Under the pieces are notes generated by a model, which was given only the letters and a program-made list of their open reading frames with translations, had not been told where the DNA came from and ran no database searches. DNA of 64,000 bases from Podarcis bocagei (Eukaryota). The position numbers were made by a program, and so were the translations under genes. The stretch is from assembly GCA_964188305.1 (NCBI GenBank), contig OZ076885.1; one strand, 5' to 3'. Below are positions 33,124 to 64,000 of this stretch, one piece after another (within the stretch, counting starts at the first letter, position 1; every line of letters begins with the position of its first letter).

Positions 33124-33187
33124 ATGGACAAAATGAACAGCATTCTGCTTACAATATTCATTATTGTAACTGTCTCCTGCAGTTCTG
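33124..33187 (+). CDS. CD59: CD59-A signal-peptide exon
   Basis: Acceptor tctttttag| with exon start at 33110; strong Kozak gccATGg; donor G|gtaggt. Confidence 0.88.
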
Positions 33188-35898: not shown

Positions 35899-38800
35899 TA
35901 TGGAGCTTTTAAAAATGTGTTGTCTATACACATCACACTTTTCCATCCTTTTTTTAGTTGATATGTCTGCAGCATTTGGAGAAGGGGTGCATTGTCTTAA
36001 ACCAGAAAAGTATTCAGATACACAAAAGAGAAGGAGCTGCCAGGACAGGTTAAAATCCCCTTTTCAGATAACTTGGAAAACACTCCTGAATGAGAGAAAC
36101 CCATTCTGTAATAAAATGTTCTCAGCCAGTGTATTCTGATGTCCTTTAGCAACTGAGCCAACTCCATGATTCTTAGGGCTGGTCAACAGCCGGGGGGGGG
36201 GGAGGGGGAGGCTGCTTTAATCTGCTCCAGATGGCAGTTCTTATGTAGAAACAAACACATTCTTTCTTAGCTATCTGGAATCTTTCATATCCAACACTTG
36301 CAGAGATGAAAAGAGAACTGTATGTAAAGAGCCATCTACTTAATGGACCTAATACATAAATCATCCCTATTTGTATGGCACATTACATTTCTAGGCGCTT
36401 GATGGCAGAGCAGAGGAATTCCCAATAAAATCAAAATTAAGTCGGCAAGAAAAAATTGACACCAAGACATGACGCTTACTGGCTTAGACTAGCATCCAAA
36501 CCCCCTTGGTACCAGGCTGGGGAAAATTCAGACTGGGCAGCAGTGTCTCTCTGCCTAGCCCTGCAACACAGTCCCTCTGCTGGTGCAGAGCTTTCCATTC
36601 TGCCTGCTGAATGGGTGGGCAGAAGTACTACTGGTGGGATCCTCACCAGTGGTAGGCCACAGTAAGCCCCAAAATTTGGCGTTCTGGGAGGAGCGGAGCC
36701 AGCTGGGATCCCATGCAAGTCCTGCTGCTGTCATTTGACGGCATCGGGCCCAATCTGGGTCTGCTTGCTGCTCCCGTCTGGCACGCAGCAATTTGCCTCT
36801 CCCGCCCGCCCTGCCCCCCACTTCCACCTTGACTGACATAAGTGGCAGGGCAATGGATGCCATGGTGGCTCTGCCAGTCCGTCTCAGTGCATTGCTACCC
36901 TCTCAGCCTCTTTATCTCGCCCTCGGGACTCTCCCTATCCTTACTCCATGCCTTCCTCGAAGCTGGAATGGGTCCTTGACCTGTGATAATGCCTCCTGCT
37001 TCCTTCGATGGAAATGATGCACATAGAAGCCTGCCCTATAAAGAAAAGGGTTGTGTCTACTGATCACTTTGGTCTCTAGCCCTGCTCACCATTGACCTTC
37101 TTGTCCCTGGAAGGAGAAAATTCAGCCCTTGGTCCATGGGCATAGCCAGGATTTTTGTTGGGAGGGGCAGAACCTCAGTTAGCTATGTATTTTTATTGAT
37201 TTAGGGGGGCAGCTGCCCCCTCTTCGCTGAAAAGAACATACCCTGACCCTAGATTCACAGGCAGCTTGTGTTGATGACAATGTTGTTGGTACTGTAGTTT
37301 GATTTGGTCAAAGTCTTATATAAACATATGGAGTGGTGGTGAGTAATTTGCCTCTGCTCAGCTTTAAAATGCTAAAACACTGCAGCAAAATGCTTGTATC
37401 ATTGTTTCATTTGCAGAAGTCTTGCTGCTAAATGTGTAGTAGCCTATATCTGCTGTTTGAACACTTACTTCCTGATCCTTATAGCCCACTTTCATGCAAT
37501 TCCCTCATATAGCAATGAAGCTTACCTTCAGGAAGTGCATTTAGAATTGCAGCCTAATGACATTTCAACTTTGAGTTTAGTGTGAAGACTTTGTCCAATG
37601 AGGGGAGGCTCTTTATACTGTAATCAGATGTGAAACGCATTAGCCTACTATTAGCTGGTATATATGACGGCCTATAGTTATTACTCTTTCTATAGTCATT
37701 CAAGAAACAATGCACTTCTTGCCATGTTTTTTAAACTGCCAATATACTACTAGCATTGCAATAAATGCATTTACTGTGAATAATGCTTATATACTATGTA
37801 TATAGCAAGGGTGGTGAATCTGTGGCCCTCTGGATGTTGTTGAATTCAGATTCCCATTAGTCCTGACCACTGGCCATGCTTGTTGGGACTGATGGTGTAA
37901 CAACTTCAGGGCAGCCACAGGTTCTTGATCCCTGCTATAAAGAGCACATTGGCTTTGTTTACAATTACACCCATTGAATAGACAGTAGCTACTTTTTAGA
38001 ATTCTTCTTTCTTCTGCAATAGTCTTCCATGCATTGGTCTTCCATGTTATTCTTGTGTGTGTATCCTTTCAGGTGGTAATGGGCTAGTTGTGGGGACAAA
38101 AAGCTCTCTCTCCCCACCCAAAAACTTTAGTTGCCGTTAACTTTCACTCCAGGATAGCACACATCTAATTTTCAGCCATTGTATGCAGATAGTGCCACAT
38201 TTTCCATTTATACACAATACATGTTTCATCAACATGGATTTGTTAAACAAACTGTTCAATCACTTGGAACATGACTGGTGATGGTTATTTTTTAAAACAA
38301 CAACTATAAAACAGTAAATAAAACACACTTCTGTGTAATGTGTGGTTGTTTGGAAATTAGGAACATAAGAAGCTGCCTTCTATGAAGCCTTAGCAATGGT
38401 CTATATAGCTTGGTACCAACTTCTCCCAACCTGAGGCCATCCAAATGTTTTAGATTACAACTCTTGTCAGTCCCATACAGCCCAGGCAAAATTCAGAAAT
38501 GATGGGTGATCAAAAACATCTGGATGGACCGAGTTGGGAAAGGCTGGTTTATACTAACTGGCAAGGGAATTTCAGACAGGGCCTCTTTCTAGCCCTTCCT
38601 GGAGATCCCAGGGGTGACATCTTCTGTGTGCAAAACATATGTTCTACCAATGCTATCTTCATACTAAAGCTGTGTCCCCTTTCCAAGTTGTGTTGCATTG
38701 AAGCAATAGCCAAGATCAGGGGTAGACAATGTGATGTCCTTTGCTTGATAAGGACCCCAGCTCCCATCATCCCTGACCAATGCTGGCTGGGAATTGCCGT

Positions 38801-39262
38801 CCAAAACATCTGGCTGGCACCACATTGGCTACCCTTCTCCAAGACTCTTGGACAGTGAAAGCACTTTTTAAGAAGCATAATGTATATGAATGGAAAGGTC
38901 ACATTTCTGCAATCCTACATTTGGGAATCATTGTTCATATTCCCAACTCTTGTCAAATATTTCCTATAGAGTGTAGGCCACATAGAGCCTATAGCAACTT
39001 TGAATCAAAACATTATCCTGTACTGATTACATGTCTATGTTCTGTCTTGATCTTTTTTTAACAAATGTCCACTGAAAAAAATAATACCCAGCTTGCAGCA
39101 TTGTCAAACAGCAGCAAAATTACACTGAGATCAATGGTTATGTTGCACACACAAAGCATTCATGCAGTATTGACACACGGTTTGAAAGCAGCAAGTTATT
39201 TATTTCCAGAAGACTCCAACAAGTGCCTAAGTGCACAGTGAAACCCATTAGCTCACTACAAT

Positions 39263-39393
39263 CAGTGCTTTTTTTTCTTTAGAAAAATAGCTGCTGGTAT
39301 CATGAAGCTGTTATAGCAAGTGGCACACTTTTTAACAACAAAAAAGAGGTGCCAGTACTGCATACCTTTGAGTACCACCTGAAAAAAGCACTG
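39263..39393. mobile_element. hAT MITE
   Basis: TIR CAGTGCTTTTTT / AAAAAAGCACTG; perfect TSD ACTACAAT. Confidence 0.88.
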
Positions 39394-39640
39394 ACTACAA
39401 TAATGTGTAACTATAATAATTTTTCCAATAAAGATTCCAAGTAGAAATGTTGCCAAATTTACCAAAATTTCTACCAGAGCCAGTATTGCATACAGCTTGA
39501 CACAAACATGATTATGTGCATAATATATACATTTTGTGAATAATTTTGCATCTAATCAGTCTGACTTTTTAAAAGAAAAAAGTTCAAACATCTGGTGGTC
39601 ATCAAGTTGGCAAAGGCTGCTGCCAGGCAATATGGAAGAG

Positions 39641-39642
<2 letters not shown>

Positions 39643-39690
<48 letters not shown>
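39643..39690. repeat. (GT)n microsatellite
   Basis: direct reading. Confidence 0.95.
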
Positions 39691-39696
<6 letters not shown>

Positions 39697-41101
39697 GGTC
39701 AACTCCAGGCTGAAGGAGCTGAGGGGTCAGGGGGATGAGAAAAATAAAAATCCCTTTAGGATGGCTAGGTGCAAAAGATGACAGGGGCTCCTAAACTTTT
39801 AACAGTATCTGAGGGAATTTCAGCAGATGTCGTTTGCCTGATAAGCTACACCTGCTGAAATTCCTGCTCCTGCACAGGTATTAAAGGTACAGGAATGTGT
39901 GACTTGCACGTAGCCACCCAGCTTGAGACTGAGGGCTCACTACAGCCCTATTTTAAGCCCCACTTTGAACCTGACTCAGTTGCTGCTGGCAGAGCACTCC
40001 TATATACATCTGCTCAGAGTTAAGTCTCATTAAATTCAGCGGAGCTTATGCCCAGGAAAGTGTGCCTAGGATTGTAGCCTAAGCACCACAGCATCTGAGT
40101 TATATAAATTGGCATAGTTGCAGTGAGTTCCCTAGCCATCAGTTTTATTTCCCCATGTTCTCCAACTTGTGCCTAACAAGCCCTGAAATGACCCTATCAG
40201 TATCCCCAAGGATTGCCCTTTTGTGAATTAATGTGAATGAAATAATCTAGTATAGATAAACAAGCAGGCATGCTTCCTGTAAGTAAAAGAGGTTGAATAA
40301 TTTTTTATAAAGCCATTTTCCCAGTAAGAGAAAGAGAGAGAGAGAAAGCGCATCACACCAGCCAGAATAAGGAAGGACAAAGATACTGTGTGCTTTGAAA
40401 AAGATACAGATATGGATGTGGTGAAAATTGGCTGCAAGCCTGGGAATCAGTTATTGCTAACTGGTGAGAAGAAAAAAAGAAATAGAAGATTAGCAGAGCC
40501 CCAGGTCAGAAAAAGAACAGACACAACAGGATTCTGTCATGGCTGCACAAGATATCACCAAAGAGGCACAAGTAGATAGCTACCTGTGCAAGTATGAAGT
40601 GTAACTGGTAGTGTAAAAACCTGCTAAAGTTAATAACCTGTTAAAGTTAATAAAAAGGTAAAAGAAAATCAAACTGTCTAGATTCCTGCTCTTGCACAGT
40701 GGTTTTGATCACCCACAGGGCACTTTTAAGAAAATAAAAGTAGGAACACCCCCTCAGCCTCTCATTGAGAACACAGGACAATGGTATAGTGCCAAAAGAA
40801 ATTAGCAGTGCTGCAGGCCAACGGGGTAAGCAAGAGAGCTAGGGACTGAAGATATGCACCCACCCAGGTTTGATGTTTAACGGAGCAAACCTATACATGT
40901 CTTCTCAGAACCAAGTTTCACCAAGTGCAATGGGATTTACGCCCAGGTAAGTGAAATAACTCCCTCTCACAGTAACCTCAGGTGATGAGGACCAGCTGAA
41001 ATGGACCCCAAACTGAGCCAGGAACAATGGTATTTAATGAATTCCTACTAAATGTCAGTGTCATATTAGACACAATATTATCCCAGCAATAAACTCCACA
41101 A

Positions 41102-41189
41102 CATAGCTGTCAACTTTTTCCTTTTTAAGGGAAATTCCCTTATTCTGAATAGGATTCCTCACAAGAAAAGGGAAAAGTTGACAGCTATG
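41102..41189. mobile_element. 88-bp hAT MITE (CATAGCTGTCAAC family)
   Basis: TIR CATAGCTGTCAACTTTT / AAAAGTTGACAGCTATG; perfect TSD CTCCACAA at 41094-41101 and 41190-41197. Confidence 0.92.
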
Positions 41190-41893
41190 CTCCACAACTC
41201 AGCCCCTGTAAAATGCACGCATTATTAATATAAACAATTCATCAGAACATTTAAATAATAATACCCCATTAATATGTACAATAAAACATGCAGTCTGCAT
41301 ATTTTAAAATGTCTGAAGGTTCTCCCTCCATTTCATAATCCCCTATAACAGCACATTTATTGTGCAGATCAAGCCCAGCCCACTGAACCTTCACAAGAAT
41401 TTGCCAGGCTATTTATTCCATCCCGCAAAATGTTGGAAGGTGTGTCTTCCTTTATGGCCACGTGGCCAGCCTTGAACTTCTCACACACCCCATCTAAAAG
41501 GGGCCGCCGCTACAATTCAGGGCTGCTCAGAACTGACTTTGTGGAGTAGCAATGCGCACATTTTAGTTTTTCCGACCTGGCACCTGTTTAAATAACGACC
41601 GAGAAACCTCTGACTGGTGACTTTTTCCTCTGATAGCCTTTTTCTCCTTTGGATATTTGGTTTTCAGTAGGCGGGTTCCCAGCTGTGCTTCAACATAAAA
41701 TACAGACGCAGAGCGTCCTTCAGCAGACAGACTCAGATACGGATCTTAAAACTGAAACCCTACTCCGGGGAGGGAGGAAGCGGCGGGGAACCTGCTGGAT
41801 TGGATAGAGAACATCCCGTTTTCTATTTCCAGGCGCTGCAGCTGAGCAATAATTAGCAGGTGATATTTGATCGAGGATCTATCAGAGTTCCGT

Positions 41894-42140
41894 CCTGGGC
41901 GTAGCCAGGAATTATGTTTGCGGGGGGCGGGCGGGCAGGACACCCACCTGGCACCATCCTCTGGCAGATTCGGAATGAAAAGTCTCAAGAACAGTTGTTT
42001 TGAATTACTTTCTTTTGACCCCAAGTGCTCAGAAAAAAATCTCTCAAATTCTTTCTACAGTTTCTACATTTAGTTAAATATTTTTATTGATTGACTTGAT
42101 TTAGGAGGGGGGCAGATGCTCCCCCCCCGCTATGCCCATG
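41894..42140. mobile_element. hAT MITE (CATGGGCGTAGCC family) upstream of the CD59-B promoter
   Basis: CCTGGGCGTAGCCAGGA...GCTATGCCCATG; TSD AGTTCCGT / AGTAGCGT (6/8). Confidence 0.65.
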
Positions 42141-42379
42141 AGTAGCGTTTATTTACCTTTCTTTCACCAGCGACAGAGAGGAGCTGTGTACCATGCATTT
42201 AAAGCATATAAAGTCCCCCAGGTATCCTGGGAACTATAATTTACCTCTCGCCGAGCTACAATTTCCAGCACCTGTAACAAACTACAGCCCCCCCCCCTTT
42301 TTTTTAATGGGAGTCCTGAGCTACAAATTCCTATCAAAGACAGTTTTGGATTTACTGGCAACCGAGCCGTTCCCTCTAG

Positions 42380-43050
42380 TTAACCCATGACGTCACCCTC
42401 TCCGCTAGCCCTTAAGCCAATCAGGAATGCCGCCCTCGGCCAATGAGGCTAAACCGAGGCTGGCTTTTGCTATATAGAAAACAATTTCCCAAGGCAGAGC
42501 AGAGCAGAGCAGAGCAGCCGAGAGGCGTGTGCAGGTAGGAGCACGGAGCAGCCGAGGAGGGGTGAGTGCAAGGGGCCTTTTCTTCCGCCAGGGTTTTCTT
42601 GATCATCAGCGAAACTCCCGCGGCTTCTTCTCCAGTCTTTCCAGCGCCTTCACTCTGTCCCTTTGCGCACCGCGTTGCAAGATGCGAGCGGCGCGAATGG
42701 GGTCGGATCCCTGGGCGGATCCGGGAGGTGGGCGGGGAAAGCGCGTGGAAGGCATTCGGGAGCGGCAGCGGGACCGAAATAGTTGCCCACTTAGCAGGCC
42801 GGTCTCGCGGAGAAGCCGAGGCAGGCGCAGCAATGCCCGGTTTCAGCGCGGGGCTTGGAGGACCCGGCGCCGATATCCCCCCCTCCCGCGGTACGAAGCG
42901 AAGGGAAATGCGCGCCTTTAGATGCTGGGGGAGAGGTTTCCGTCACGCTGGAGATCATTATCGTTATTTATATAATAAATGCACAGGCGTGTCGTATATA
43001 AGACCCTTCCCAGCTCGTTGCTCATTCCGGCGCATGGGCAGGGCCATAGG
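42380..43050 (+). promoter_or_regulatory. CD59-B promoter, non-coding exon 1 and CpG island
   Basis: TGACGTCA (CRE) 42388-42395; CCAAT at 42417 and 42440; CCGCCC ~42430; TATATAGA 42471-42478; strong donor GG|GTGAGT at 42561/42562 (alternative CAG|GTAGGA at 42534); CpG-rich to ~43050. Confidence 0.75.
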
Positions 43051-43164
43051 CGTAGCCTTAAATATAAATAATCAATAAATCAATAAAAGTGCTTAACTGA
43101 GGCTCTGTCCTCCCCCAACAAAAGCTTGCTGCCCCCCCCCCCGCAAATCCTGGCTACGCCCATG
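43045..43164. mobile_element. hAT MITE (CATGGGCGTAGCC family), inverted relative to the 41894 copy
   Basis: CATAGGCGTAGCC...GGCTACGCCCATG; TSD GGCAGGGC / CGCAGGGC (7/8); a third partial copy lies at ~37135-37230. Confidence 0.78.
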
Positions 43165-43357
43165 CGCAGGGCCTTGGTGGGGAACTGGATTCACTACATT
43201 TCTGTATGATCCGGATCGGTTGCACTGGGAGTTGGGGGGAAATAATGGAAGTCTGTCTCGGTCTCTAGAGGCGGTGGCTTGTCTACTTAGCGATGGTCTT
43301 TGAGGTACCTACCTGACTATATCTCGCAGTAGGAACCTGTAATGTGCACACCTGCCA

Positions 43358-43594
43358 TTTGGATTTGATATCCCGCCTTTCACTCCCCTTCAGGAGTCTC
43401 AAAGCGGCTCACATTCTCCTTTCCCTTCCTCCCCCACAACAAACACTCTGTGAGGTGAGTGGGGCTGAGAGACTTCAAAGAAGTGTGACTAGCCCAAGAT
43501 CACCCAACAGCTGCATGTGGAGGAGCGGGGATGCGAACCCGGTTCCCCAGATTACGAGTCCACTGCTCTTAACCACTACACCACACTGGCTCTC
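43358..43594 (-). mobile_element. tRNA-derived CORE-type SINE (MIR/Squam3-like)
   Basis: Minus strand reads GAGAGCCAGTGTGGTGTAGTGGTTAAGAGC (A box)...GGGTTCGCATCCC (B box), then a CORE-like body and an L2-like 3' end. Confidence 0.8.
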
Positions 43595-45979
43595 ACCAGT
43601 GTTTATTCTCCTGGGGGGGGGGGATGTTATTGTAAAGGTATGAAATTTAACAAGAGGAAAGAGGGGAGGTGTAAAATAGCACCCTACATTTCACAAGGCA
43701 AAATGTTACACGAAGGTGCTGCAGACCCAGCCTGGTATGACCTAACCCTACTTGCTTGTGGAAAGTTTGCTGCCTACTGAGGAATATGTATGGGTGTGGC
43801 CCCTGGCTGATTTTTCATCTGGGCCTCTAGAGCAGAGCTTTCCAGACTTTCCATGTTGGTGACATGCATCATTTCGCAAAACAGTAATTAAGTTTTACTA
43901 GCAAACCAGAGGTTAAACTCTTTCCAGCCCTGGGAGGAGCGCCCTGAGCATTCACGCAACACACCTACACACTGCAGCCCACACACTAACATGTCGGAGC
44001 ACCTCTTCCGTTGGAGAGGAATTCATCCTGTTTTGTTATTACTTCAAAGTGAACTGTTGTGTGGGGCAACCAAAAAAGGGAATGAGCTGCATTGCTGAGT
44101 TCAATTCTGGTCCAGTCTGTAGGCACCATGAAAGCAAAACTGAAGGAAGGAAACTTTGGCCAAGAAGCTTTGACTGAGGTGTCAAACAGGCAGAAATGTT
44201 TTGTTAGAAGTATAAATACTGATAAGACCGCAGTCCAGATAAGAGGGTACACCAGTTTTAAGAAGAAAAGAGCTTTGTTACTCCATGCAGCTAGCGGTGC
44301 TGGGTGATAAGGTTTGATACCACATCAAGCCCATAAATAACGGAAACCGTTTTTGCAGTTTTCTCGTCTTGTCACTGCTACAGAATGAATTTTAGTTGAG
44401 TGTAAAAGAGAGAATTAAAGCAACAAGTCATCAAACCGGAAATGGTTTTTTGGATGTTTGGGAACAGAGTAGTCTTATTTTTATCCTCTGGATTCAATCT
44501 TAGTTTCATTGTTTCCACACAAAGTTTTTCCTGATGTCTTTTGTGCTGTGGTATATTTTGTCTGCAGAAGAAAAACATCGCTTTCAGATTCCATTCTTGT
44601 TGCTAGTAAAGAAACATTTTTCTTTGATTTTTACCTGGGCTAATCCTCAGTTTTGAATTTCCTGGATGCTATATATTGGCTGTGAATCCAAGAACTAAGG
44701 AGCTTGTTTCCATTCCTGGGATTCCATTGGTAGATAAGTTTTTCTCAAGCTAGAAGGCCAAGTAGTTAGGACAACTAGGCTTATACAATATGCTTTTAAT
44801 AGTGGTGTTTAGGTGGGGTGTTTAACTGGTGGAGTTTTTGTGGTCCAATATAGTATTCAGCAATGGTTAAATAAGTTGTACTTGATTACAGTACATAAGA
44901 TTATAATTTTGTACATAACAGCCACTTTGTATTTTCCTTACCCGAAGATTCATCCATATATGATGCGCTATTAGATTTCTCTTTGGTCAGAGGAGGTTGG
45001 TCCATGAGGGCAAATGGGGCACTACCCCCAACTTCAGTTGACGCTCACCTGCCTCCTTACTTAGAACCAGCCCAGAGGGTGGCACTGGCTATCCATTTCC
45101 ACCTCCTCAATGTTGGCGTTGTAGCCTGATGAGGGTGGGGGACAAGCCAAGACTTAGTTGTCTCCACCTGTCTCTGGCTCGAACTACAATTGGTCTCCTT
45201 ACATTCTGCCCCTGTGGTAACATAGGATAGGGCATATAGAAAATGGGTGACATGCCAGTCCTTGTAATTTTTTTCTGCACCACACATTCGCAGTATTACC
45301 AGTTTTGTGCAAGACTGCTGTTTTGGCCTTCTCATTAGTGCTGCTACTTTTTTCTTGCTCCAGAACAGCTTGATTAAACTACGATTTGCCAAAATAAATA
45401 GAATTGTGGCTGCAAATAAAGTTATTGGCACCAAAGAGGGATTGGAGTGGTTGTGCATCACTGGGTAAAGGGTCTCATTAAGGGGTGGCAATGAGAGTTT
45501 GGTGTAGAAATTGGGCGGATTTGCCCACAATTTAAGAGATGCAAGCAAATTTCACTCTTGTGTAAGACCTCTGTTAAGCAAACAGAAATGGGTGTTGCGC
45601 CCCACAAAAAAGCACATGCCTCCATTTTGCTCATTGTGAGGCATGTTAACAAAGGATGGTAACATTTGCTTTTGTGGAATTGTGCAGGTTGGTTGGTTGC
45701 TGTAGTGGAAGTCTACACAAGGTTTTCCACTAACACAGCTGGGCTTGCCTCTCTTCCTCCAACAAAATGCTCTGAAATTGGCTCTGGTGGGGGTTTGGAG
45801 GATTCCAGAACAGCTCAAGGATGGGAGGAGATAGGAGATTGTTCCATCTGGCAAGTTGAAAAGATTCTGCTGACAGAACAGTTGCCGTAGTGCTACATTG
45901 AATTGTTTCAGAACATCCAGTACCAACCAAACTGTGTTTTTGCTTTATAGTCTAAGGCTGGAAAAATAATAACTGGAAG

Positions 45980-46043
45980 ATGAAGACTCTAGTTACCACC
46001 GTTTTGATCGCCACATTCGTTCTGACTTTGTTCAGCCACTTTG
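45980..46043 (+). CDS. CD59: CD59-B signal-peptide exon
   Basis: Acceptor tgctttatag| with exon start at 45951; aagATGa; donor G|gtaagt; not in the ORF track. Confidence 0.88.
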
Positions 46044-49000
46044 GTAAGTATGCAAGTGCGCTATTAAAAATATTGCGAACTTAGAGCAAGGCACTGAGCA
46101 GAGGAGGTGGGCTTCACAAAAAGGGGTTCAGGGGCTGGGAGAGAAACGTGGACTTGAACAGTTGTTGCTGGTATTTCCCCTAAAGAGTAATAGATATGGG
46201 GGGTGGTTTCTGGTGGGCTATGATTCTAGTAGGCCAAGGAGGACTTGCTTAATTTTGACTCCTGGAGGCAAACCTACTGGGATGTGGTAGGTTCTTCCTT
46301 TGTAGGTAGGTAGTTCTTCAGAGATGCCAGCCACTGCTTATGGCTTATAGCTTAATCTATACTTGTGATATTATACTTGCGGTATTGCTGTTGAAACTGG
46401 TTTGTGCTGACTCCAGCTGTATTGTAGTCAGATCTTCTAGAATTGAATCGGGAACTCTAGAACAGACTTCTTCATATGGCTCTTTTGCATACATACTAGA
46501 TTATACTTAGTCCCCTCAATGAGAAAAGCCTTGCATTAATGCCACAAACTATTTTTATTTATTTGGTTCAAATTTATAACTCCTTTTTTCCTTTCCATGG
46601 GAAACCTGTGATAACACACAATAAAATTACATAAAGTTGTTCAAAACAACTCTGCGGGATGGTGAATGCTTCCCTCTGTGAGGGAACATTCCCAGACCTG
46701 CTGAAAGAGGCGGTCATTAAACCGTTTCTTAAAAAACCATCTTTAGACCCGGCCAGTATGGCCAACTATCGCCCAGTCTCAAATCTTCCATTCTTGGGCA
46801 AGGTGATTGAGCGTGTGGTTGCTGAACAACTCCAGGCACGCCTGGAGGATGCGGACCATTTGGATCCCTTCCAACCAGGGTTCAGGCCTCATCATGGGAC
46901 TGAAACTGCCTTGGTCGCGCTGGTTGATGATCTCCGGTGAGCTAGGGACAAAGGTGAGAGTTGTTTCCTAGTTCTGCTGGATCTCTCAGCGGCCTTTGAT
47001 ACAATCAACCATAACATCCTTCTGGACCGTCTAGAGGGGCTGGGAGCTGGGGGTACTGTTATACAGTGGTTTCGCTCCTTTCTCCTGGGCCGTGTTCAGA
47101 AAGTGGGGGGGGTGAGTGTTCAGACCCTTGGGCCCTCACTTGTGGGGTGCCTCAGGGTTCCGTCCTCTCCCCCATGCTTTTTAACATCTCTATATGAAGC
47201 CGCTGGGAGAGATCATCAGGAGGTTTGGGCTGGGTGTCCATCAGTATGCAGATGATACCCAGCTCTACCTCTCTTTCAAATCAGAACCAGTGAAGGCGGT
47301 GAAGGTCCTGTGTGAGTGCCAGGAGGCAGTTGGAGGATGGATGGCAGCGAATGGATTGAAGTTGAATCCTGACAAGCCAGAAGTATTGTTTTTGGAGGAC
47401 AGTGGGCGGGCTGGTGTGGAGGACTCCCTGGTCCTGAATAGGGTAACTGTGCCCCTGAAGGACCAGGTGCGCAGCCTGGGAGTTATTTTGGACTCACAGC
47501 TGTCCATGGAGGCGCAGGTCAATTCTGTATCCAGGGCAGCTGTCTACCAACTCCACCTGGTACGCAGGCTGAGACCCTACCTGCCCGCGGACTGTCTCGC
47601 CAGAGTGGTGCATGCTCTAGTTATCTCCCGCTTGGACTACTGCAATGCGCTCTACATGGGGCTACCTTTGAAGGTGACCCGGAAACTACAACTAATCCAG
47701 AATGTGGCAGCTAGACTGGTGACTGGGGGCGGCCGCCAAGACCACATAACACCGGTCTTGAAAGACCTACATTGGCTCCCAGTACGTTTCCGAGCACAAT
47801 TCAAAGTGTTGGTGCTGACCTTTAAAGCCCTAAACGGCCTCGGTCCAGTATACCTGAAGGAGCGTCTCCACCCCCATCGTTCTGCCCGGACGCTGAGGTC
47901 CAGCGCCGAGGGCCTTCTGGCGGTTCCCTCATTGCGAGAAGCAAAGCTACAGGGAACCAGGCAGAGGGCCTTCTCAGTAGTGGCGCCCGCCCTGTGGAAC
48001 GCCCTCCCATCAGATGTCAAAGCGATAAATAACTACCTCACATTTAGAAGACATCTTAAGGCAGCCCTGTTCAGGGAAGCTTTTAATCTGTGATACTTTA
48101 CTGTATTTTTTGTTTCTATGGAAGCCGCCCAGAGTGGCTGGGGAAACCCAGCCAGATGGGCGGGGTACAAATAATAAATCATTATTATTATTATAGAATA
48201 CATTGATACAGGCAGGGATGTTCCTCCAGAGGTAGTTGGACTCCACATCTCATATTTTTTTTCCTATGCTGACAGGACTGATGGGTTTTGAAGTCCAGTA
48301 ATCTCTGGAGAGGGATGCGGGTGGCGCTGTGGGTTAAACCACAGAGCCTAGGGCTTGCCGATCAGAAGGTCGGCGGTTCGAATCCCCCGGACGCCCATTG
48401 CTCTGTCCCAGCTCCTGCCAACCTAGCAGTTTGAAAGCACGTCAAAGTGCAAGTAGATAAATAGGTACTGCTCCGGCGTGAAGGTAAACGGTGTTTCCGT
48501 GCATTGCTCTGGTTCACCAGAAGTGGCTTAGTCATGCTGGCCACATGACCCGGAAGCTGTACGCCTGCTCCCTCAGCCAATAAAGTGAGATAGATGACTG
48601 CTGCAACCCCCCCCCCCAAGTCGGTCACAACTGGACCTAATGGTCAGGGGTCCCTTTACCTTTACCTTAATCTCTGGAGGATTGTAGCTTCCCCTGTTGG
48701 AAGGACAACAGAGATCATTCAGAGTGCAACTTAAGGATGAATTCTATTGTTACTGTTAAAGTGAACTAGGTGGTGGTGGGGAGTTTTACATAGCAACCAG
48801 GTAAGGTGGCATGATCTTTACTAAAACAGTATGTGCTCTGATGAGCTGTGACATCTGATATGCCTTTGCGGTACGCTTAAACACTTTTAACTTATCTTTT
48901 AATTATTTCTACATCAATATTGTAGTTCAAGCTTGTTACCAGGAATCTAGTTTCATGATGGAAGCCTGCAATAAGACCATCTTCTATTCTCCTCCCCTCT

Positions 49001-51855
49001 TTCATTTAGGAGCTGCCTTAAAATGTTATCAGTGTCTGGATGGTATAGGTCCATGTAAAACGAACATCACATGCTCGGGTGATACTGATTCTTGCATATT
49101 GGTAAAGTTGGGTAAGTATGCTGCCTTATTTGATTCATGTGTAACTTGTGATTAAGTACAATTTTTAAAGAACTATTTTCTTTACTTCATTATGGTCAGC
49201 ACTTGTATTTTATGCATTTTTTCCTCCCAACTCACTGAAGTGAGGCCTTTTCTTCAAATTACCGTATTTTTCGCTCCATAGGGCGCACCTGACCATAGGG
49301 CGCACCTAGTTTTTAGAGGAGGAAAACATAAAAAAAATATTCTGAATCAAATGTTGTACTAAACTATTTAAAGCAGCAAAGCGGGTGGCTCCTGTCCGCT
49401 TTGCTGCTTTGAAGCGAGCCTCAGAGGAGGGAAGGAAGGGGAACCATGGCTTATCTAAGTCCAGTTAATAATGCTGAGCCTGATTTTATATGCATCTCAA
49501 AGCCCTTGACATATATACATTATAATGTCAAGCCAAGATAGGCCTCCTGCATAGGAGGAGGGGAGGAGAAAAGAGGGAGCCATCATAGCTCAATGGGGAG
49601 AGCATGGAGAAGATCCCAAGTTCAGTCCTTGAAAGCTTCTCCGGGTAGGGCTGAGGGTGTGTCTCCTGAAACCCAGGTGAGCCTCTGCCCATCAGTGAAG
49701 ACAAAACTGAGCTCAATGGGCTCAGGGGTCCTGACGTGGTACAGGGAAGGTCCCTCTGTTCCTGTTTAAATTAGCCCTTTCTTCAGAACCATGGGGACTA
49801 CACTCTTAGTTTGTTTTTAAAGGGAACAGCTGTAACCTCAGTGGCTTTGCATGCAGAACACCACACGTTCAATCCCCGGCTTCTCCAGGCCTGAAACTCT
49901 GGCAAACTGCTACCAGTCAGTGTTGACATTACTAAGCTAGATGGAGTAGTGGATCCAACTCCTTATAAGGCAGCTTCCTAGGTTCCCATTTATGCTTCAG
50001 ATCTGGGCGTGAGGCTTGCTTTCACTTTTAGTGTCAAGAGGGTGGTTCTTTGCACATCTGGAAGATGACTGTGTCACCTCCCATCACCCTCTTGAAGGTG
50101 CTTTTACAGCTCAGGGGAAAGGGCAGGCAGACGCAGCATCTGTAAACTGTAGCATCCTGAATTAAGGGGGGGAGGGAAAGAGCTGATCTTCAGCTTGAAA
50201 CCAGGACTTGCTCTTTAACCATGCTGCTCCTCCAGCTGCCAATGCCATCCATGTAACCTGTGTGAATATCAAGTGTGGGTTGTGTCCAGGAACCTGGGAG
50301 GATTTCTTTCACATGAGTGCATGTTTTTGTCTTTAAATAAACAGCCCATGCAAGTTTCCAGCTCTTATGGCCATGCCTGGCTGTCTCAGTGGAAATCTGA
50401 GGAGGCTGAGGTGGACTTTCCAGTGGTCAAAGTCTTCCTGCCCTCTTTCCCCACTGAACTCCCGCACCCTGCTTCAAAGCAAGCTACGGAGGGGATTCCC
50501 TCTGCTTTGAAGCAGGAAAGTGGAAGAGGAGCTGCTTACACGAGTGTAAGCTGCTCCCCTCCCACTTTCCTGCTTCAAAGGGAGCCTGGGAGGAGGGAAT
50601 CTGCTGCAGCCTCGAGCAGCGAGGAGGATCCATGGGTCCCTCCTTCCCTCCTCCGTGGTTGCTTTGAAGCAGGAAAGTGGGAGAAGAGCTGCTTACACGA
50701 GTGTAAGCTGCTCCCCTCCCACTTTCCTGTTTCAAAGCGAGCCACGGAGGAGGGAGGGACCAACGGAATCCCCTTCCCTCCCTCCTCCCCGGCTCAGCTC
50801 AGCAGCCACGGCTCTTGCTGGCTTTACAATGAGCCGGAAGGAGGGACAGATGGCAGTCCCTCCTCCCGCCTCCCTGTAAACCCAGCCAGAGCCGCAGACA
50901 CACTGTACGCAGCTCTTGCTTTAAAGGGAGAGCTGCGCAGAGCTTGTCGGCAGCAGCGGCTCTTGCTGGCTTCGCTCCATAAGACGCACAGACATTTCCC
51001 CTTACTTTTTAAGGGGGGAAAAGTGCGTCCAATGGAGCGAAAAATACGGTATTTTAGGGATAGGTTGTTGAGGAGATTGCATTGGTTTAAGTATGGCATT
51101 AGGCAAATTTAATTGTCCTGCTTCTGACTCTTCTCTCCCCATCCTCATTAACATTCTTCATTAATGTTGAGTGATAAAGCATACAAATTACATCTTTTGT
51201 ACTTAAAGAAGTAAAGTAGGTCTTGGATTCAATGTGAAATTATTGTACACATTTTCATTTCCCCTTAATTTTCTCCTTTGCCCCTGTGCAGAGAAGCAAA
51301 TGGGTGTTGGATGGTTACTTTGGCTTGATACTATTGCCTTTGTTACTGGAATAGGAAGCTGGCTGCTTCTTCAAATAGCTCTTGTAAAGTAAAATATCTC
51401 AAAGAAGATTTGGGGGCAAACACATGGTTTATTTTTTTCTTTTTAGATGCTGTCTCTATATTTTTATGACAGTATTTTAAAAGCCACCTTGCGTGTTTTG
51501 AACATAGGCAATATTTTTTAAAATAACTGTAAGGAAGGTATGGAAGACTTAAATAGACATTCTTAAACTCTTCTCCCCCTCCCCCAATTTTCTTGCTCAG
51601 CAGGAAAGCAAACTACTTTCCATAAAATCTTGTCTTTGTGTTGTTGTTTTTTAAGATACTGGAAGAAATATCTCTACGTGCTGGAAATACTCCAACTGTG
51701 AATTTGACTTTATTGAGAAAGAATTCAAGACTGGAAACTTCAGATTTCATTGCTGCCAAAAAGATTTGTGTAATGGCAGCCCAATTACAGCAGGTAGTAA
51801 GATGGTCCTTGGCTTAACTTCTGTGCTGATCGCAATCCAGATGCTCGGCTTCTGA
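45980..51855 (+). CDS. CD59: CD59 paralog B (GPI-anchored Ly6/uPAR protein), 121 aa
   Basis: Exons 45980-46043, 49010-49111, 51656-51855 (64+102+200=366 nt). Protein MKTLVTTVLIATFVLTLFSHFGAALKCYQCLDGIGPCKTNITCSGDTDSCILVKLDTGRNISTCWKYSNCEFDFIEKEFKTGNFRFHCCQKDLCNGSPITAGSKMVLGLTSVLIAIQMLGF has 10 Cys, CWK, CCQKDLCN and a GPI tail. Exon sizes and phases match paralog A. Confidence 0.92.
46650..48194 (+). mobile_element. 5'-truncated L2-clade LINE with RT domain in CD59-B intron
   Basis: NYRPVSNLPFLGKVIE, GFRPHHGTETAL, DLSAAFD and YADD motifs; premature TGA at 46938-46940 and a frameshift near 47105; same 3' UTR and tail as the 31535 copy. Confidence 0.92.
48311..48667 (+). mobile_element. Sauria SINE, full length
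   Basis: GTGGCGCTGTGGGTTAAACC...GGTTCGAATCCC (A/B boxes) ... CCTTTACCTTTACCT; 12-bp TSD TAATCTCTGGAG at 48299-48310 and 48668-48679. Confidence 0.93.
49010..49111 (+). CDS. CD59: CD59-B LU-domain exon (first half)
   Basis: catttag| AALKCYQCLDGIGPCKTNITCSGDTDSCILVKL |gtaagt; 102 nt. Confidence 0.92.
49262..51049. mobile_element. Tc1/mariner (pogo/Tigger-like) non-autonomous element containing a ~1-kb foreign segment
   Basis: TA TSD; 27-bp TIRs CCGTATTTTTCGCTCCATAGGGCGCAC / GTGCGTCCAATGGAGCGAAAAATACGG (25/27 match); internal palindromes at 50490-50740. Confidence 0.82.
51656..51855 (+). CDS. CD59: CD59-B terminal exon
   Basis: ttttaag| TGRNISTCWKYSNC...CCQKDLCN...IQMLGF*; AATAAA at 51954 and 52164; not in the ORF track. 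Confidence 0.92.
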
Positions 51856-58265: not shown

Positions 58266-58670
58266 CAGGGGGATTGCAACCAACAAGTCATCTAACTGAA
58301 TGACCTTGTCCTCCTTTTCCAATTGCAGGATGCCTCCGCTGTAGCCATGTTGTTGCTAAGGTTTGTTGTACTTTGTTGCAGCCCAGTTCCAAGACTGCAC
58401 GCAATGTGGTCAACATGAGTGCATTGGCATTATTAGAACTCCAAAAATATAACTATGATGCAAGCTACTCTGCTAAGAGAAAATGCTCTCAATTGTCTGG
58501 ACACAATAAGAAAGGCATTGTGTTTGGATTATAGAAGCTGCCCATTGTTCTGGTTTAAAGCTTTAAGACAAATCTTTGTTTCATAACATCACTGTAAGTT
58601 ACTTACACTTTCAGGGTAGAATATTTATAAGGCATTTGAAGCCTCACTGGGGTTTAACTGTTCTTAGAGC

Positions 58671-58865
58671 ATGGGGCAGCTCCACACTGGTAACATGAAA
58701 GGAACAGAGGTGGCAGAATTACAGGATATGTACAAAAAGTTTGTTCTAGAATGCCCCAGCGGAGGTCTCCATTTGCATGAATTTAAGCAGTTTTTTGGCA
58801 TTACCAGCCAGAGTGAAGCATCTGAATATGCTGAGAATGCATTTAAATCCTTTGACACGAATGGG
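58671..58865 (+). CDS. GCAP2-like exon 1
   Basis: agcATGg; MGQLHTG...[21 protein letters not shown]...FDTNG |gtgagt. Confidence 0.93.
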
Positions 58866-61800
58866 GTGAGTATAATTTTCAAAAACACTTGTAGATAACT
58901 TCTGTGTACATCCATCTAATTCAGGTTGGAGGCTTATTATCCTAGAAGCACCCAGCAAAAATTATGATTGTTCTGCCATTTCTGTTTGGATAATTTTAAA
59001 AATATTGATGTTTTCAAGTGATTGCTTTTCTATTAATGTTTCAGGATAACATGATAGACTTTTTGGAATACGTAGCAATTTTAAACCTAGTACTCAGAGG
59101 GAAACTTGAGCACAAACTGAAGTGGTCATTTAAAGTGTACGACACCAACAGGAATGGCTTTCTTGATAAGGCTGAACTAAGGAAAATGGTGAAGGTAAGA
59201 AGTCCTTCTAGAGGAAGAGGGGCCCCAGCAACGACTTGGCAGGATTACGCCAAACCATGAGATTGGTTGAACCTCTTTACCATGAATTATTATTTATTTC
59301 ACTGCATCTGCATCCCACCTATTCTCCAAGGAGCTCAAGGTGGTGCTCATGATTCTCCCTGTCTTCACACAATCCCAACAACCCTGCGAAGTAGGTTAGG
59401 CTGAGAGGTGGCGTCTGGAGGAAGGCCATCCAGTGAGCTTCATGTGAGATCCAGTCATGAATTTCCCACAATAATGGAGTGTCTCACCCCAGAGAAGTTG
59501 CACCAGATCTTGGCCAGTGTGTGTGTCATTAATGCACACATAGTAGGAGTATTGATTTGTGCAAGAAGATTTATCATACATTGCTTAATACCCAAACAGT
59601 CTCTAAGTGGTTTGCAAAAGGATTTGCATGGACTGCCAGTTTGTTACCAGGCCAAGTCAAGGTTTTACTGCTGGTATATAAAACTGCTAATGGCTTGGGA
59701 CTAGTTTACTTGCGACATTATCTTGCCTCATACATACCTGTTCAACCACTTTGATCAACGGAATTTGAAGTTTACAAATGCCATATAATGTTTGTTCTGC
59801 ATTTGAGAGGAACAATTTTTTTACTGCAGCAAAATCTATCCTTTACAATGCCCTGCCTACTGACATTAGGCAAATGCTCTCACTACTGTAAATTGATTTA
59901 GGTGCCTGCTGAAATCCTGTTTATTTCAGCAAGCCTACCCAGGCATGGGTTTTAGTTCGCTATGTTTGTTACTTTCTACCCCTGCCTTCGTCCCCTTCCT
60001 CTCCTATTTCCCTTGTGTGTTGACAACCAATTTGTAAGTGACTTTGTAAAGTGCCATGTATGGACGGTGCCATATAAATACGTGTGCTTTTTTTAATTAT
60101 TAAATTAATTTCTCCCAGAGTGTCTATAATGTCAAACAAGGATGGGCAAGAAATATGGATACTCAGATGTCAACCCTGGAGGAAGTGTGTAACAGAATAT
60201 TTCAACTTATGGATGAAAATAATGATGGTAAATGTACTTTATTGTTAGAATTATCTGTGGGCTTCCAAAAAGTGGCAGTGGCTTGTAAGTGAAAGTGGGT
60301 CCAATGGCTCTGCATTTGCTGTAGAGGGGGAAGTGAGGGGCAGATTGGGCTCGTCAGCCTGGGCAAGTACCGTATTTTTTGCTCTATAACACGCACCAGA
60401 CCATAACACGCACGTAGTTTTTAGAGGAGGAAAACAAGAAAAAAAATATTCTAAACGAAATAGTGGATATACAGTGGTGCCTCGCAAGATGAAATTAATT
60501 CGTTCCGAGAGTTTTTTCGTCTTGCGGTTTTTTTGTCTTGCGAAGCATGGTGTCGGAAAAGTTTTGGAAAAGCTTCAAAAATCACCAAAAACCTCAAAAA
60601 AGGCTACCACACCGCGTTCTATGAGTTGCTCCTCGAAGTCAAGTCGTAACTGTATTAACGGTGTTAAGAAAAAGGAAACAAATTGCAAGACGTTTTCGTC
60701 TTGCGAAGCAAGCCTATAGGGAAATTCGTCTTGCGAAGCAGCTTAAAAACCGCAAAACCCTTTCGTCTAGCGAGTTTTTCATCTTGCGAGGCATTCGTCT
60801 TGCGGGGCACCACTGTATGATTTTTGTGGTTCATGCTGTGGCCACAGACATGTGATCTGACAGTGTGTTTGGAGTAGCCCAATGCAAAAATCCTGAGGAT
60901 CCATGTGGATCCATGCTTTGTAACCACGGAGGAGGGAAGGAAGGGGAATCATGGATCCTCTGCTCACGACTGCAGCAGATCCCCCCCGCCACCCGCAGGC
61001 ATTCGCTCCATAACATGCACAGACATTTCCCCTTACCTTCTAGGAGGAAAAAAGTGAGTGTTATGGTGCAAAAAATACGGTAGCTCTTCTAGGAGAAGGA
61101 ATCTCTGATCCCAAACTTCCACTGCTTTGTAGGGTATCTTTGAGAGAAAAATGGTTAGGGAGTAAACCCTACATAATTCCAGAGTAGAGTCCCTAACACA
61201 GGTGGCACCTTGTACACCTCCTTCCGGCAACTCCTGCAGCCAAGCTGTTGCCAAATGTGTCACTCTGCTGTCTTTTGGACCACATCAGTGAGTCTTGTAG
61301 TCTGGGCAGCCCAGGACCTCCACACACACTGCCCAGGTTTGTGTCCTGGGTAGGTCACCTTGGTGCGGCTTACACAGTGGTTTGACTTCACCCCTGACTT
61401 CACTCCACTGTCTTCTGAGACAGAGAGATGCCAACAATTCCTCTTTGAACAAATATGTTGAGATATACTACCTGGGAACAATGCTGACCATTCGGAAAAA
61501 ATGAACTGGCAAGTTTTAGCTTTCAGGCTCACTGCCAAAAAAGGAAAGTGCCAGGCTGTTTCTCCCCCAGCATCTGTGTCTTTTAGCTGTGCACTTTAAG
61601 TGAATGGATGGCTTTTGTATTAGGTGCTACTCCCATATCTGCTCCAAAAGTGAAGGGTTCTGTTCTGGACCCACAAAAGAGTGCTGGGCTCAACCCTAGG
61701 CTAATCATCCAAATATTCTGGCTTCTGCCTCTAGGCCCTGTCAGGTACCACACTTTAAGTTCAAGAGCCTGCAAGCTCTAATATTGTTCCATAACACAGT

Positions 61801-63739
61801 GCCGTCAGTGCAGTCATATTTTCAGTATAACACAGAAATACTAGTTTTCAGACATATCTCTGCTCTTGACACATCACGTTTCAAGAATAGAAGACAAATA
61901 TTTGAAGCCATTTGGCTCGAATGCTATTCATATCAACAGACTGTTGCATGCTATGTAGCTCACTAATTTGTGGATGAAGACCTGCATTTTGAGAATTAAT
62001 CATACAGGGCTTAAACCGTCCTAGCCAGGAGTGAGAGGAACTCCTCTGTCCAGAAGCTCCCACATACCCACTGCCTCTCTGTAGCTTCCAGTTTTAGCAC
62101 AGCAGCCTGGTCAGTTTTATACTAAAGCTTTGCTGCTGAGAGAGAAGTGCCCTCCAGGCTCTGCCTATTGCTGGATCCTCTCTCTCCGCCCAGGGAAACA
62201 CATAACAGTTTGCAAACTATTTGCAGAGCCCTCTCATTTTGCCTTCCAGTTTTTGGTTACACTGGTGTGTGACGGAGTCTTGAGCATTAGCTGTTATGGA
62301 CGCTTGGTTGCTGCCAGTTATGCAAGACTGGCAAATGCCACTAACTTTACAGCTGTTTGTTCAGAGGCAAGTCCCACCTTATTCAATGGGACGTCCTCCC
62401 TTGAAAGTTTGTTTAGGATTGCAGCCTAAGTTAATTATCTAGGGGAATTTGGGAAGAATGGCCAATCATGTAGAAAAGAGGGCTAAGCTTTTCTGATAAT
62501 GCTTCAGCTGTGAGCTATGATATATACACAATAGAGGTTATCGAAATAAGACTTCTCAGGACAGCTGCTCAGTTGCATAACTGTTTGGCTGGCAGAACAA
62601 TACAGTTCTTAGTGACTCACTTAAAAGACTCCCTGGGAGGAACCTAAGAGTCACCAAAACTATACAGAAAATAATGTTTTGACTTTATTGTTTATTAAGA
62701 AGTATCCTGGTTAAAAACTGAGGTCAGTGGCTTGGCTTCAGGAAACTGCAAGTACAACATGCCCCCATGGCTCCTCTTGTCCTTCCATGTCTGACCAACA
62801 ATGGCTGGTAGGAAGAAGAGCTGCAAAGCAACACTCTGCATTTGTTTCCCCTTTCTGTTGCTCCCATTTCCGCTATGTAAATGGGAATAATACTGGCCCA
62901 TCGTATAATATGATGGAGCTCAGCAAATGAAGTACTTTGTATGTAAGATAATATTCATTTATGGGTAATGATAACAGATAATCTACTTTGGTCTTTCCGT
63001 GGCAGAACAAGACTCCACTCTACAGAACACTTGCTCTGAAGCAAAGATGTCAAACTCAAAGAGCTCAGAGGAACAAATTTCATGCTTAGTAGAGGACCAG
63101 GAGTGTCACAGGCATATTTTCACCAACAAATGTAGTAAGATGCCAAACCACCAATTTCAATCTGATATACAACTAAAGGGCTGGGGGGCTTAAGCTCTCT
63201 TTCTTTAAACATTTATAGCAGTAAAAGGGAAATAAATGAAATATTGCTGTGCTCTGGGGGCTCCTAAAGCAAATTTCCTGAGTAACCATAACTACTCACC
63301 CATCTGGGAATGCACAGCAATTCTCTTCTTAGAATATACACTGCAGTCACTACACTATTCAGTAAGAGCAAATGGCAAGCCATCCCTTCCATGATACGAA
63401 AGGCGTTGGCTTCCCAGTCCCAAAGATGATTCTGACCTTTGTTGTGTACACGGGAGATTCCTTAAAGTTCTGATGTATCTCCTAGCTTGTGTTTGATACC
63501 CTGATCTACTAGTTTACGGTAAGTTATGGCAGAACCTCTTTTAATCCATTTTTGAAATTATTCTTCCAGGAAAAATTTCACTGAAAGAGTTTGTTGATGG
63601 AGTGCAAAGAGATGAGTGGGTAAGGAAAATGTTAAACATAGATCCCACAGAATGGATCCTTGAACACCAAAGAAAAAAGAATGCAGATGAAAAGGACCAA
63701 ACACTGGAGGAGAAAGACATGTCATCAGACCTTCCCTAG
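58671..63739 (+). CDS. Guanylyl cyclase-activating protein 2-like (GCAP2/GUCA1B paralog; neuronal calcium sensor), 207 aa
   Basis: Exons 58671-58865, 59045-59194, 60119-60227, 63570-63739 (624 nt) follow the 4-exon GCAP layout. Motifs: MGQLHT myristoylation site, disabled EF1 (ECPSG), EF2 [14 protein letters not shown]3 [14 protein letters not shown]4 DENNDGKISLKE, and GCAP2-type VAELQ, LNLVLRG-x-LEHKLKW, RD-x-WV-x-KML. Confidence 0.93.
59045..59194 (+). CDS. GCAP2-like exon 2
   Basis: tttcag| [50 protein letters not shown] |gtaaga; 150 nt. Confidence 0.94.
59290..59444 (-). mobile_element. older CORE-type SINE fragment
   Basis: CAACAACCCTGCGAAGTAGGTTAGGCTGAGAG...CCAGTGAGCTTCATG body; truncated at 59444. 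Confidence 0.6.
60119..60227 (+). CDS. GCAP2-like exon 3
   Basis: ctcccag| [36 protein letters not shown] |gtaaat; not in the ORF track. Confidence 0.9.
60370..61080. mobile_element. pogo/Tigger-like MITE (same family as 49262) in GCAP2-like intron 3
   Basis: TA|CCGTATTTTTTGC...GCAAAAAATACGG|TA. Confidence 0.85.
60472..60815. mobile_element. Tc1/mariner MITE nested in the previous element
   Basis: TA|CAGTGGTGCCTCGCAAGA...TCTTGCGGGGCACCACTG|TA; internal TCGTCTTGCG repeats. Confidence 0.88.
63570..63739 (+). CDS. GCAP2-like exon 4
   Basis: cttccag| [55 protein letters not shown]; not in the ORF track. Confidence 0.9.
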
Positions 63740-64000
63740 CATTGGTTATTGTATGTGAAATATTTTCAGCATGATGGCCCTTTGATCCCATGAAATGAGA
63801 AGTACAAAATGGGTCAAGGCATTTTAGCTATTATATAATCTAAGGAGTAGTTATGAAGTTGAGTACTATCTCTTGATCATTTTCCAGAATAACATCTTTC
63901 AGATAACGAAGCAGAAAAAATAGGTTCCAAGGGTATGTGATATCCTAACATATCAGAGATATTAACCTGAACATATTTCCAGAATATTTCTGTCTGAGAA

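Follow-up and report, generated by a model that had tools for sequence, protein, structure and literature searches.

In sauropsids a single visual guanylyl cyclase is present, and lizards pair this cyclase with up to five guanylyl cyclase-activating proteins (GCAPs). Least studied among the lizard GCAPs is GCAP2-A, for which neither an assay nor a knockout exists because the protein has no counterpart in mammals or birds. We analysed a GCAP gene in a stretch of 64,000 nucleotides (nt) from the wall lizard Podarcis bocagei (contig OZ076885.1 of assembly GCA_964188305.1; in the following, the window), where it is located on the plus strand at positions 58671-63739. The paralog GCAP2-A was defined by Lamb & Hunt 2018, whose alignment holds members of Anolis (XP_008115612), bearded dragon and Xenopus (PMC6170504). 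Gesemann & Neuhauss 2023 described the same paralog as guca1bb, counted five GCAPs in Anolis and reported for Guca1Bb of Lacerta viridis exons of 195/150/109/170 nt and a first intron of 179 nt (PMC10061024), values equal to those in the window. A preprint of 2025, in which it is called GUCA1B2 or GCAP2L, reports that caecilians, archelosaurs, snakes and mammals lack the gene, that frog eyes rarely express it, and that it was present in one holostean and one squamate eye transcriptome (10.1101/2025.10.31.685797). The class is already catalogued under three names (GCAP2-A, guca1bb and GUCA1B2), a possibility the earlier note on this locus had warned of. The present analysis adds a corrected gene model and a testable link to the parietal eye; the paralog class itself was known.

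The window gene is very probably the wall-lizard ortholog of GCAP2-A, an intact and constrained GCAP of four exons which, judged by homology, would serve as a Ca2+/Mg2+ switch of a cyclase. Public models (P0066, P0269) and the ortholog of Elgaria stood in for the window protein in database searches and fold predictions. The search with exon 1 returned mainly exon read-through fragments; the useful match was P0066, i.e., UniProt A0A670HWH1 of Podarcis muralis, with residues 41-182 identical to exons 2-4 of the window. In word searches, first with P0066 and later with the Elgaria protein in its full length, the nearest relatives were exclusively 'GCAP2-like' proteins of tuatara and lizards (Elgaria, Sceloporus, Phrynosoma, Hemicordylus, Varanus, two Anolis species, Pogona, Tiliqua, Sphenodon and Podarcis). 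Next in the ranking were 'GCAP2-like' proteins of 193 amino acids (aa) from amphibians, lungfish, chimaera and ray-finned fish, and GCAP2 proper followed only after those. The window protein also visibly matches the Anolis, bearded-dragon and Xenopus rows of the published alignment (PMC6170504).

A maximum likelihood tree (LG+C20, 61 rows) was calculated with P0066 as representative of the window gene, nine intron-derived residues being masked. The window protein grouped with that of P. raffonei (support 100/99) and then with ten other lepidosaur 'GCAP2-like' proteins (100/100). This lepidosaur clade was nested in a GCAP2-A clade of 28 rows (93/82) together with members from lungfish, amphibians, chimaera and ray-finned fish, and the whole clade was sister to GCAP2-B of gar and paddlefish (86/96). 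The GCAP2 proteins of Podarcis, Lacerta, Elgaria, Tiliqua, Salvator and Candoia were placed outside. Uniting the lepidosaur GCAP2-like proteins with GCAP2 in one clade cost 42.5 log-likelihood units (approximately unbiased (AU) test, p = 1.2e-5). Identities summed over the exons were 83% to the Elgaria GCAP2-like protein, 70-73% to those of Anolis, Pogona and Sphenodon, 54% to GCAP2 of Podarcis or Lacerta and 38% to a GCAP1-like protein. Exon 1 was 84.6% identical to Elgaria GCAP2-like and 55.6% to P. raffonei GCAP2, and exon 3 was 91.7% identical to Elgaria. The exon sizes of 195/150/109/170 nt fit the Guca1Bb signature of 195/150/109/137-170 in Lacerta, Varanus and Pogona (PMC10061024). Guca1B has 204/150/115/122-128 nt; a third exon of 109 nt is listed only for Guca1Bb, while that of Guca1A has 91 nt (PMC10061024 Table S1). 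A separate GCAP2, 54% identical to the window protein, was found in P. raffonei and Lacerta agilis, and in P. raffonei this true GUCA1B is on a chromosome other than that of the GCAP2-like gene. The earlier note had proposed an ancient GCAP2-type paralog of non-mammalian vertebrates, distinct from GUCA1B; the position in the GCAP2-A clade, the AU test and the chromosomal separation bear this out.

The four exons, read from the sequence and translated, comprise 624 nt and 207 codons, and all three introns are bounded by GT..AG (Table 1). The N-terminus MGQLHT fits the myristoylation motif M-G-x-x-x-T, with G2 nearly invariant among the relatives, and from this motif the modification is predicted. 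EF-hand 1 has a Cys-Pro loop (ECPSG) and is predicted to be unable to bind Ca2+; its residues E27, C28, P29, S30 and G31 do not vary among 64 relatives. EF-hands 2-4 are canonical by the rule quoted from PMC6170504, in which positions 1, 3, 5 and 12 of the loop are occupied by D, D/N, D/N/S and E; EF-hand 4 reads DENNDGKISLKE. The linker SVYNVKQGW in exon 3 is a mark of lepidosaur GCAP2-A. Among solved structures, bovine GCAP2 (1JBA) was the top match for exon 1 (5e-16), exon 2 (6e-19) and exon 4 (4.5e-9), with GCAP1, GCAP3 and further neuronal calcium sensors ranking behind it, and likewise for exons 2-4 jointly (P0066:41-182; 6e-42). Exon 3 alone, too short to score, had no significant solved relative. 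With Pfam on single exons, exon 2 matched the generic EF-hand_1 at 1.5e-8 and exons 1, 3 and 4 stayed below the threshold. The predicted fold of the Elgaria ortholog has a core predicted local distance difference test score (pLDDT) of 70-87 (AlphaFold), and GCAP1 (2R2I) and GCAP2 (1JBA) were the first matches in a fold search. The window gene product is a member of the GCAP subfamily, with the four-EF-hand fold of neuronal calcium sensors as predicted for the Elgaria ortholog.

Contigs from three runs (X1, X3 and X5; three studies, two organism labels), which are labelled 'RNA?', were aligned to 58500-63990. We took these runs for cDNA because the contigs are spliced. The junctions 59194/60119 (924 nt skipped) and 60227/63570 (3342 nt skipped) were present in all three runs, the junction 58865/59045 (179 nt skipped) in X1 at a depth of 42; contig depths of spliced transcripts ranged from 6.6 to 47.5 over the three studies. 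Exon translation and contig junctions confirm the exon coordinates of the complete four-exon, 207-aa GCAP that the earlier note had described, and the GCAP2-type signatures claimed there stand as well (1JBA as top match, ECPSG in EF-hand 1, three canonical EF-hands). The 5' untranslated region (UTR) in Table 1 has at least the length given, one contig extending about 105 nt further upstream. The ratio of non-synonymous to synonymous changes (dN/dS; Nei-Gojobori counts exon by exon, then summed over exons) was 0.064 against P. raffonei, 0.171 against Elgaria and 0.160 against Anolis. In the RNA contigs, a count gave approximately eight synonymous and two non-synonymous coding differences. The gene is intact, transcribed and under purifying selection.

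Tree, exon sizes and synteny place the window gene in one orthogroup with the GCAP2-A, guca1bb or GUCA1B2 genes described elsewhere, with no difference at the level of the family. The Podarcis protein differs from other GCAP2-A in a deletion of two residues (NID-PTEW instead of VDINPTEW), in EF-hand 3 (DTNRNG instead of DTDGNG) and in a longer charged tail. The sister paralog GCAP2 (GUCA1B, e.g., bovine 1JBA) is 54% identical within Podarcis and shares the four-exon layout, the myristoylation motif, the ECPSG of EF-hand 1 and the three canonical EF-hands; it differs in its location on another chromosome, its pairing with GUCA1A and an exon 3 of 115 instead of 109 nt. In lepidosaur GCAP2-A, position 7 of the EF-hand 3 loop is occupied by Phe and not by Cys. 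The nearest further paralog is GCAP2-B (zebrafish GCAP7; a gene of 192 aa in gar), the sister of the GCAP2-A clade, which is reported only from ray-finned fish; the window gene groups with 2-A and not with 2-B. The frog guanylyl cyclase inhibitory protein (GCIP) is likewise a little-studied non-mammalian member of the GCAP family, on a separate deep branch that was lost in amniotes (PMC6170504). The close relatives of the window protein that the searches found are all of the GCAP2 type; the tree contained no named GCIP sequence.

By analogy to GCAP1 and GCAP2, a myristoylated GCAP2-A would bind the photoreceptor membrane guanylyl cyclase GC-E, the single one in sauropsids. In the dark, with Ca2+-loaded EF-hands, GCAP2-A would keep GC-E off. 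In the light the Ca2+ concentration falls, and the Mg2+-bound GCAP2-A would turn GC-E on and thereby restore cGMP. The cell type of action may be cones or rods of the lateral eye or pineal or parietal photoreceptors; the earlier note had put forward cones, pineal and parietal eye as candidate sites.

Several observations weigh against the assignment of such a cyclase switch to the window gene. The literature search yielded no functional study and no cyclase assay of GCAP2-A, and no biochemical or cell-type evidence for it in tetrapods. The Trp that precedes YKKF in GCAP1 and GCAP2 is replaced by Met or Leu in all GCAP2-A and GCAP2-B proteins (alignment A1, columns 20-25). In GCAP1 this Trp is part of the cyclase interface. 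The C-terminal end ..EQRRKSA(L/M)F, retained in GCAP2 and in GCAP2-A outside the lepidosaurs (alignment A1), has given way to a variable charged tail in lepidosaur GCAP2-A. The stem branch of the latter is long, with 0.47 changes per column, and leaves room for a functional shift. The Met/Leu exchange, the Phe in EF-hand 3, the charged tail and the long stem branch could go along with shifted protein properties. On the level of the transcript, NCBI models carry a cassette that would break EF-hand 4, and two of the three runs (X3 and X5, with one organism label) gave contigs that keep intron 1, which is spliced out in X1, a run with another label. The raw RNA run X23 (unlabelled tissue, 12% of the run read) contained zero exon reads and is uninformative.

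As to the site of action, the distribution of the gene among amniotes was compiled from the genome survey of PMC10061024, from matches in the protein database and from the table on parietal eyes in Romero et al. 2025 (PMC12043008). Gene and parietal eye are both present in the tuatara, Iguania, Anguimorpha, Scincoidea and Lacertidae. Both are absent from geckos (Gekko, Sphaerodactylus and Paroedura in the genome survey, Eublepharis and Euleptes in the protein database), teiids (Aspidoscelis in the genome survey, Salvator in the protein database), snakes, archelosaurs (turtles, crocodilians and birds) and mammals. Absence from the protein database is an unreliable sign of gene loss, for Lacerta agilis shows only GCAP2 there though Lacerta viridis has Guca1Bb; therefore, the absences rest mainly on the genome tBLASTn table of PMC10061024. 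Among amniotes, GCAP2-A is kept only in lineages having a parietal eye, a pattern that mirrors the parietal opsins: parapinopsin, parietopsin and lepidopsin show the same distribution (Romero et al. 2025, PMC12043008). This co-distribution of GCAP2-A with the parietal eye is new; no link between the two was found in the literature searched, and neither GCAP paper draws it. One may tentatively read from it that lepidosaur GCAP2-A is chiefly the cGMP-feedback sensor of the photoreceptors in parietal eye and pineal complex, discarded at each loss of the parietal eye. A main role outside the lateral eye agrees with the rarity in frog eye transcriptomes, for which an extra-visual role in frogs was suggested by the authors (10.1101/2025.10.31.685797), and in teiids, birds and turtles, which are diurnal and highly visual, the losses cannot be put down to nocturnality. 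On the other hand, GCAP2-A is expressed in the eyes of gar and bowfin (PMC6170504 Table 1), a complete coding sequence came from one squamate eye transcriptome (10.1101/2025.10.31.685797), and most or at least several losses of the gene go together with bottlenecks of nocturnal or fossorial life. With this evidence on both sides we regard a function mainly in parietal and pineal photoreceptors as possible but rather doubtful. If the co-distribution does reflect function, GCAP2-A would provide the component for Ca2+ feedback that is still missing from the chromatically antagonistic cascade of the parietal eye, and a non-opsin gene would join those that track the loss of the third eye.

The public Podarcis models deviate from the four-exon gene and from each other. 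P0066, the Ensembl/UniProt model of 182 aa, uses an internal donor after ECPSG together with an upstream acceptor, so that 34 residues of exon 1 are missing and nine intron-derived residues are added. The NCBI model of P. muralis (XP_028584198, 183 aa) begins inside exon 2 and includes the cassette between exons 3 and 4 (Table 1). In P. raffonei, the cassette occurs in the NCBI isoforms X1 (250 aa), where exon 1 is complete, and X3 (183 aa). With the cassette included, the loop of EF-hand 4 would be interrupted between DENND and (G/R)KISLKE. A main product of five exons, in which 43 residues are inserted into EF-hand 4 so that only two EF-hands would work and the Ca2+ response would be altered, appears improbable. 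In its favour, the cassette is contained in Gnomon models for two species of Podarcis, between which it is 95% conserved; it leaves the frame intact and is flanked by AG and GTAAGA as splice sites. Against it stands the direct joint of exon 3 to exon 4 in all three RNA runs, in which no contig junction touched the cassette or the Ensembl-type donor. In Elgaria and Anolis the cassette had no tblastn match. Its differences from P. raffonei, none synonymous and two non-synonymous, both alter the protein; two residues within the cassette also differ between the window and the RefSeq protein of P. muralis. AlphaFold assigned the 250-aa isoform a pLDDT of 30-48 over the insert and of 51-66 around EF-hand 4, compared with 76-87 around EF-hand 4 in the Elgaria ortholog; the overall value of 60.7 was too poor for a fold search. 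Relative to that ortholog, the insert reduces the confidence for EF-hand 4 and the C-terminal region. We conclude that the cassette is a feature of the annotation, specific to lacertids and weakly supported, bearing in mind that contigs can miss minor isoforms, and that the functional product is the four-exon form of 207 aa. All three public Podarcis protein models (182, 183 and 250 aa) appear to be wrong, none being supported by RNA. This disagreement with the RNA-supported form is new, and a correct gene model (four exons, 207 aa) is the precondition for expressing and testing the protein.

A decaying or silent relic, i.e., a pseudogene in the making, is still less credible. It would suit the repeated loss of GCAP2-A across vertebrates (PMC10061024; 10.1101/2025.10.31.685797), an evolution faster than that of GCAP2 in the tree, and the retained intron 1. 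With this intron the frame stops after ten extra codons, yielding a truncated product of 75 aa; the Logan open reading frame (ORF) P0271 (75 aa) is this read-through product. The retention could be regulated or could reflect pre-mRNA. However, the frame is open, the splice sites follow the consensus and every Ca2+-coordinating residue is intact, the dN/dS values lie between 0.06 and 0.17, and spliced transcripts occurred in three studies at the depths given above.

The GCAP2-A gene of the window lies downstream of FBXO3 and two CD59 genes, in this order (Table 1). The F-box/ApaG exons and the Pfam CD59 matches upstream establish the FBXO3-CD59 locus named in the earlier note. In human, FBXO3 and CD59 are located at 11p13. 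In P. raffonei a CD59 gene is directly upstream of the GCAP2-like gene, as in the window. In gar, GCAP2A and 2B are located on LG27 among orthologs of genes of human chromosome 11 and chicken chromosome 5, with no human or chicken copy (PMC6170504 Table S1), and the gar locus contained GCAP2-A and GCAP2-B head-to-tail, matching that report. GCAP2-A is the whole-genome-duplication sister of GUCA1B, situated in the human-chr11/chicken-chr5/gar-LG27 block of the phototransduction paralogon. A GCAP exon other than those of this gene was not detected in the 64-kb window by tblastn with GCAP1, GCAP2 and GCAP2-like proteins, nor was a GCAP1-like gene present within 10 kb downstream of the P. raffonei gene; a GUCA1A partner, about which the earlier note had asked, is thus lacking in both ranges. 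Next to P. raffonei GUCA1B, a tail-to-tail GUCA1A was not seen within the 10-kb flank; in Lacerta viridis the two genes are spaced by about 15 kb on one scaffold (PMC10061024).

That the window gene is a diverged or relocated ortholog of the true GUCA1B has next to no probability: bovine GCAP2 is the top solved-structure match and the Podarcis protein is entered in UniProt as 'Guanylyl cyclase-activating protein 2', but a second, 54% identical GCAP2 exists in P. raffonei and Lacerta agilis (in P. raffonei on a different chromosome), tree and AU test split the two genes, the exon sizes are of the Guca1Bb and not the Guca1B type, and no GCAP1-like neighbour was found. The earlier note had also named two outcomes that would contradict it, a GUCA1B ortholog with GUCA1A downstream and an unexpressed gene with dN/dS near 1; neither was observed. 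A lizard-specific duplication was rejected by the AU test (p = 1.2e-5), and a retrocopy was rejected as well, the introns being at the family positions.

Table 1 Features of the P. bocagei window around and upstream of the GCAP2-A gene
Feature	Position	Strand	Remarks
FBXO3	9075-25307	+	F-box exon 9075-9185; ApaG exons 22192-22323 and 23351-23602; further exons read by eye
Two tandem CD59 genes	33124-51852	+	Pfam CD59 PF25152 on four exons, two per gene; matches 34522-35895 and 48859-51852
GCAP 5' UTR	58500-58670	+	contiguous with exon 1 in contigs X1 (from 58509) and X5 (from before 58500)
GCAP exon 1	58671-58865	+	65 codons, donor GTGAGT; MGQLHT, disabled EF-hand 1, first half of EF-hand 2 loop (DTNG)
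GCAP intron 1	58866-59044	+	179 nt, GTGAGT..TTTCAG
GCAP exon 2	59045-59194	+	50 codons; remainder of EF-hand 2 and EF-hand 3
GCAP exon 3	60119-60227	+	109 nt, phase 1 end, donor GTAAAT; SVYNVKQGW linker, EF-hand 4 loop residues 1-5 (DENND)
Cassette	63006-63134	+	129 nt, 43 codons, AG before and GTAAGA after, phase 1 to 1, between exons 3 and 4; NCBI models
GCAP exon 4	63570-63739	+	170 nt including TAG; finishes EF-hand 4 (G-KISLKE), C-terminal helix, charged tail
GCAP 3' UTR	63740-64000	+	continues beyond window end; X1, X3 and X5 contigs run from exon 4 to 63990 and further

Both in P. raffonei (L001 23105-25247; 3727 residues) and in the spotted gar (L005 16521-22209; 4945 residues), the next downstream gene has the same orientation and is represented by a giant model. 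Neither model had Pfam matches, and the Podarcis one has a start rich in tandem repeats; either a neighbour conserved between the two or an artefact of annotation is conceivable. Intron 3 of the GCAP gene contains nested inverted repeats at 60368-61082, with outer terminal repeats of 29 nt (60368-60396 and 61054-61082) and an inner element with terminal repeats of 25 nt (60469-60493 and 60794-60818). The depth of the RNA runs rose to about 55,000 over these repeats, and many reads skipped the inner element (60467 to 60814), which indicates a transcribed family of very high copy number, resembling miniature inverted-repeat transposable elements, with filled and empty copies. In an intron of FBXO3, on the minus strand, an ORF of 1013 stop-free codons (17627-20665) matched the Pfam families Exo_endo_phos (3e-16) and RVT_1 (6e-40) and may be an intact ORF2 of a long interspersed nuclear element. 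Two near-identical stop-free segments on the plus strand, of 262 codons (31486-32271) and 302 codons (47185-48090), are located one just before each CD59 gene, the longer one matching the C-terminal part of a reverse transcriptase (RVT_1 3.2e-6). This repeat may have been carried along by the CD59 duplication or may have mediated it.

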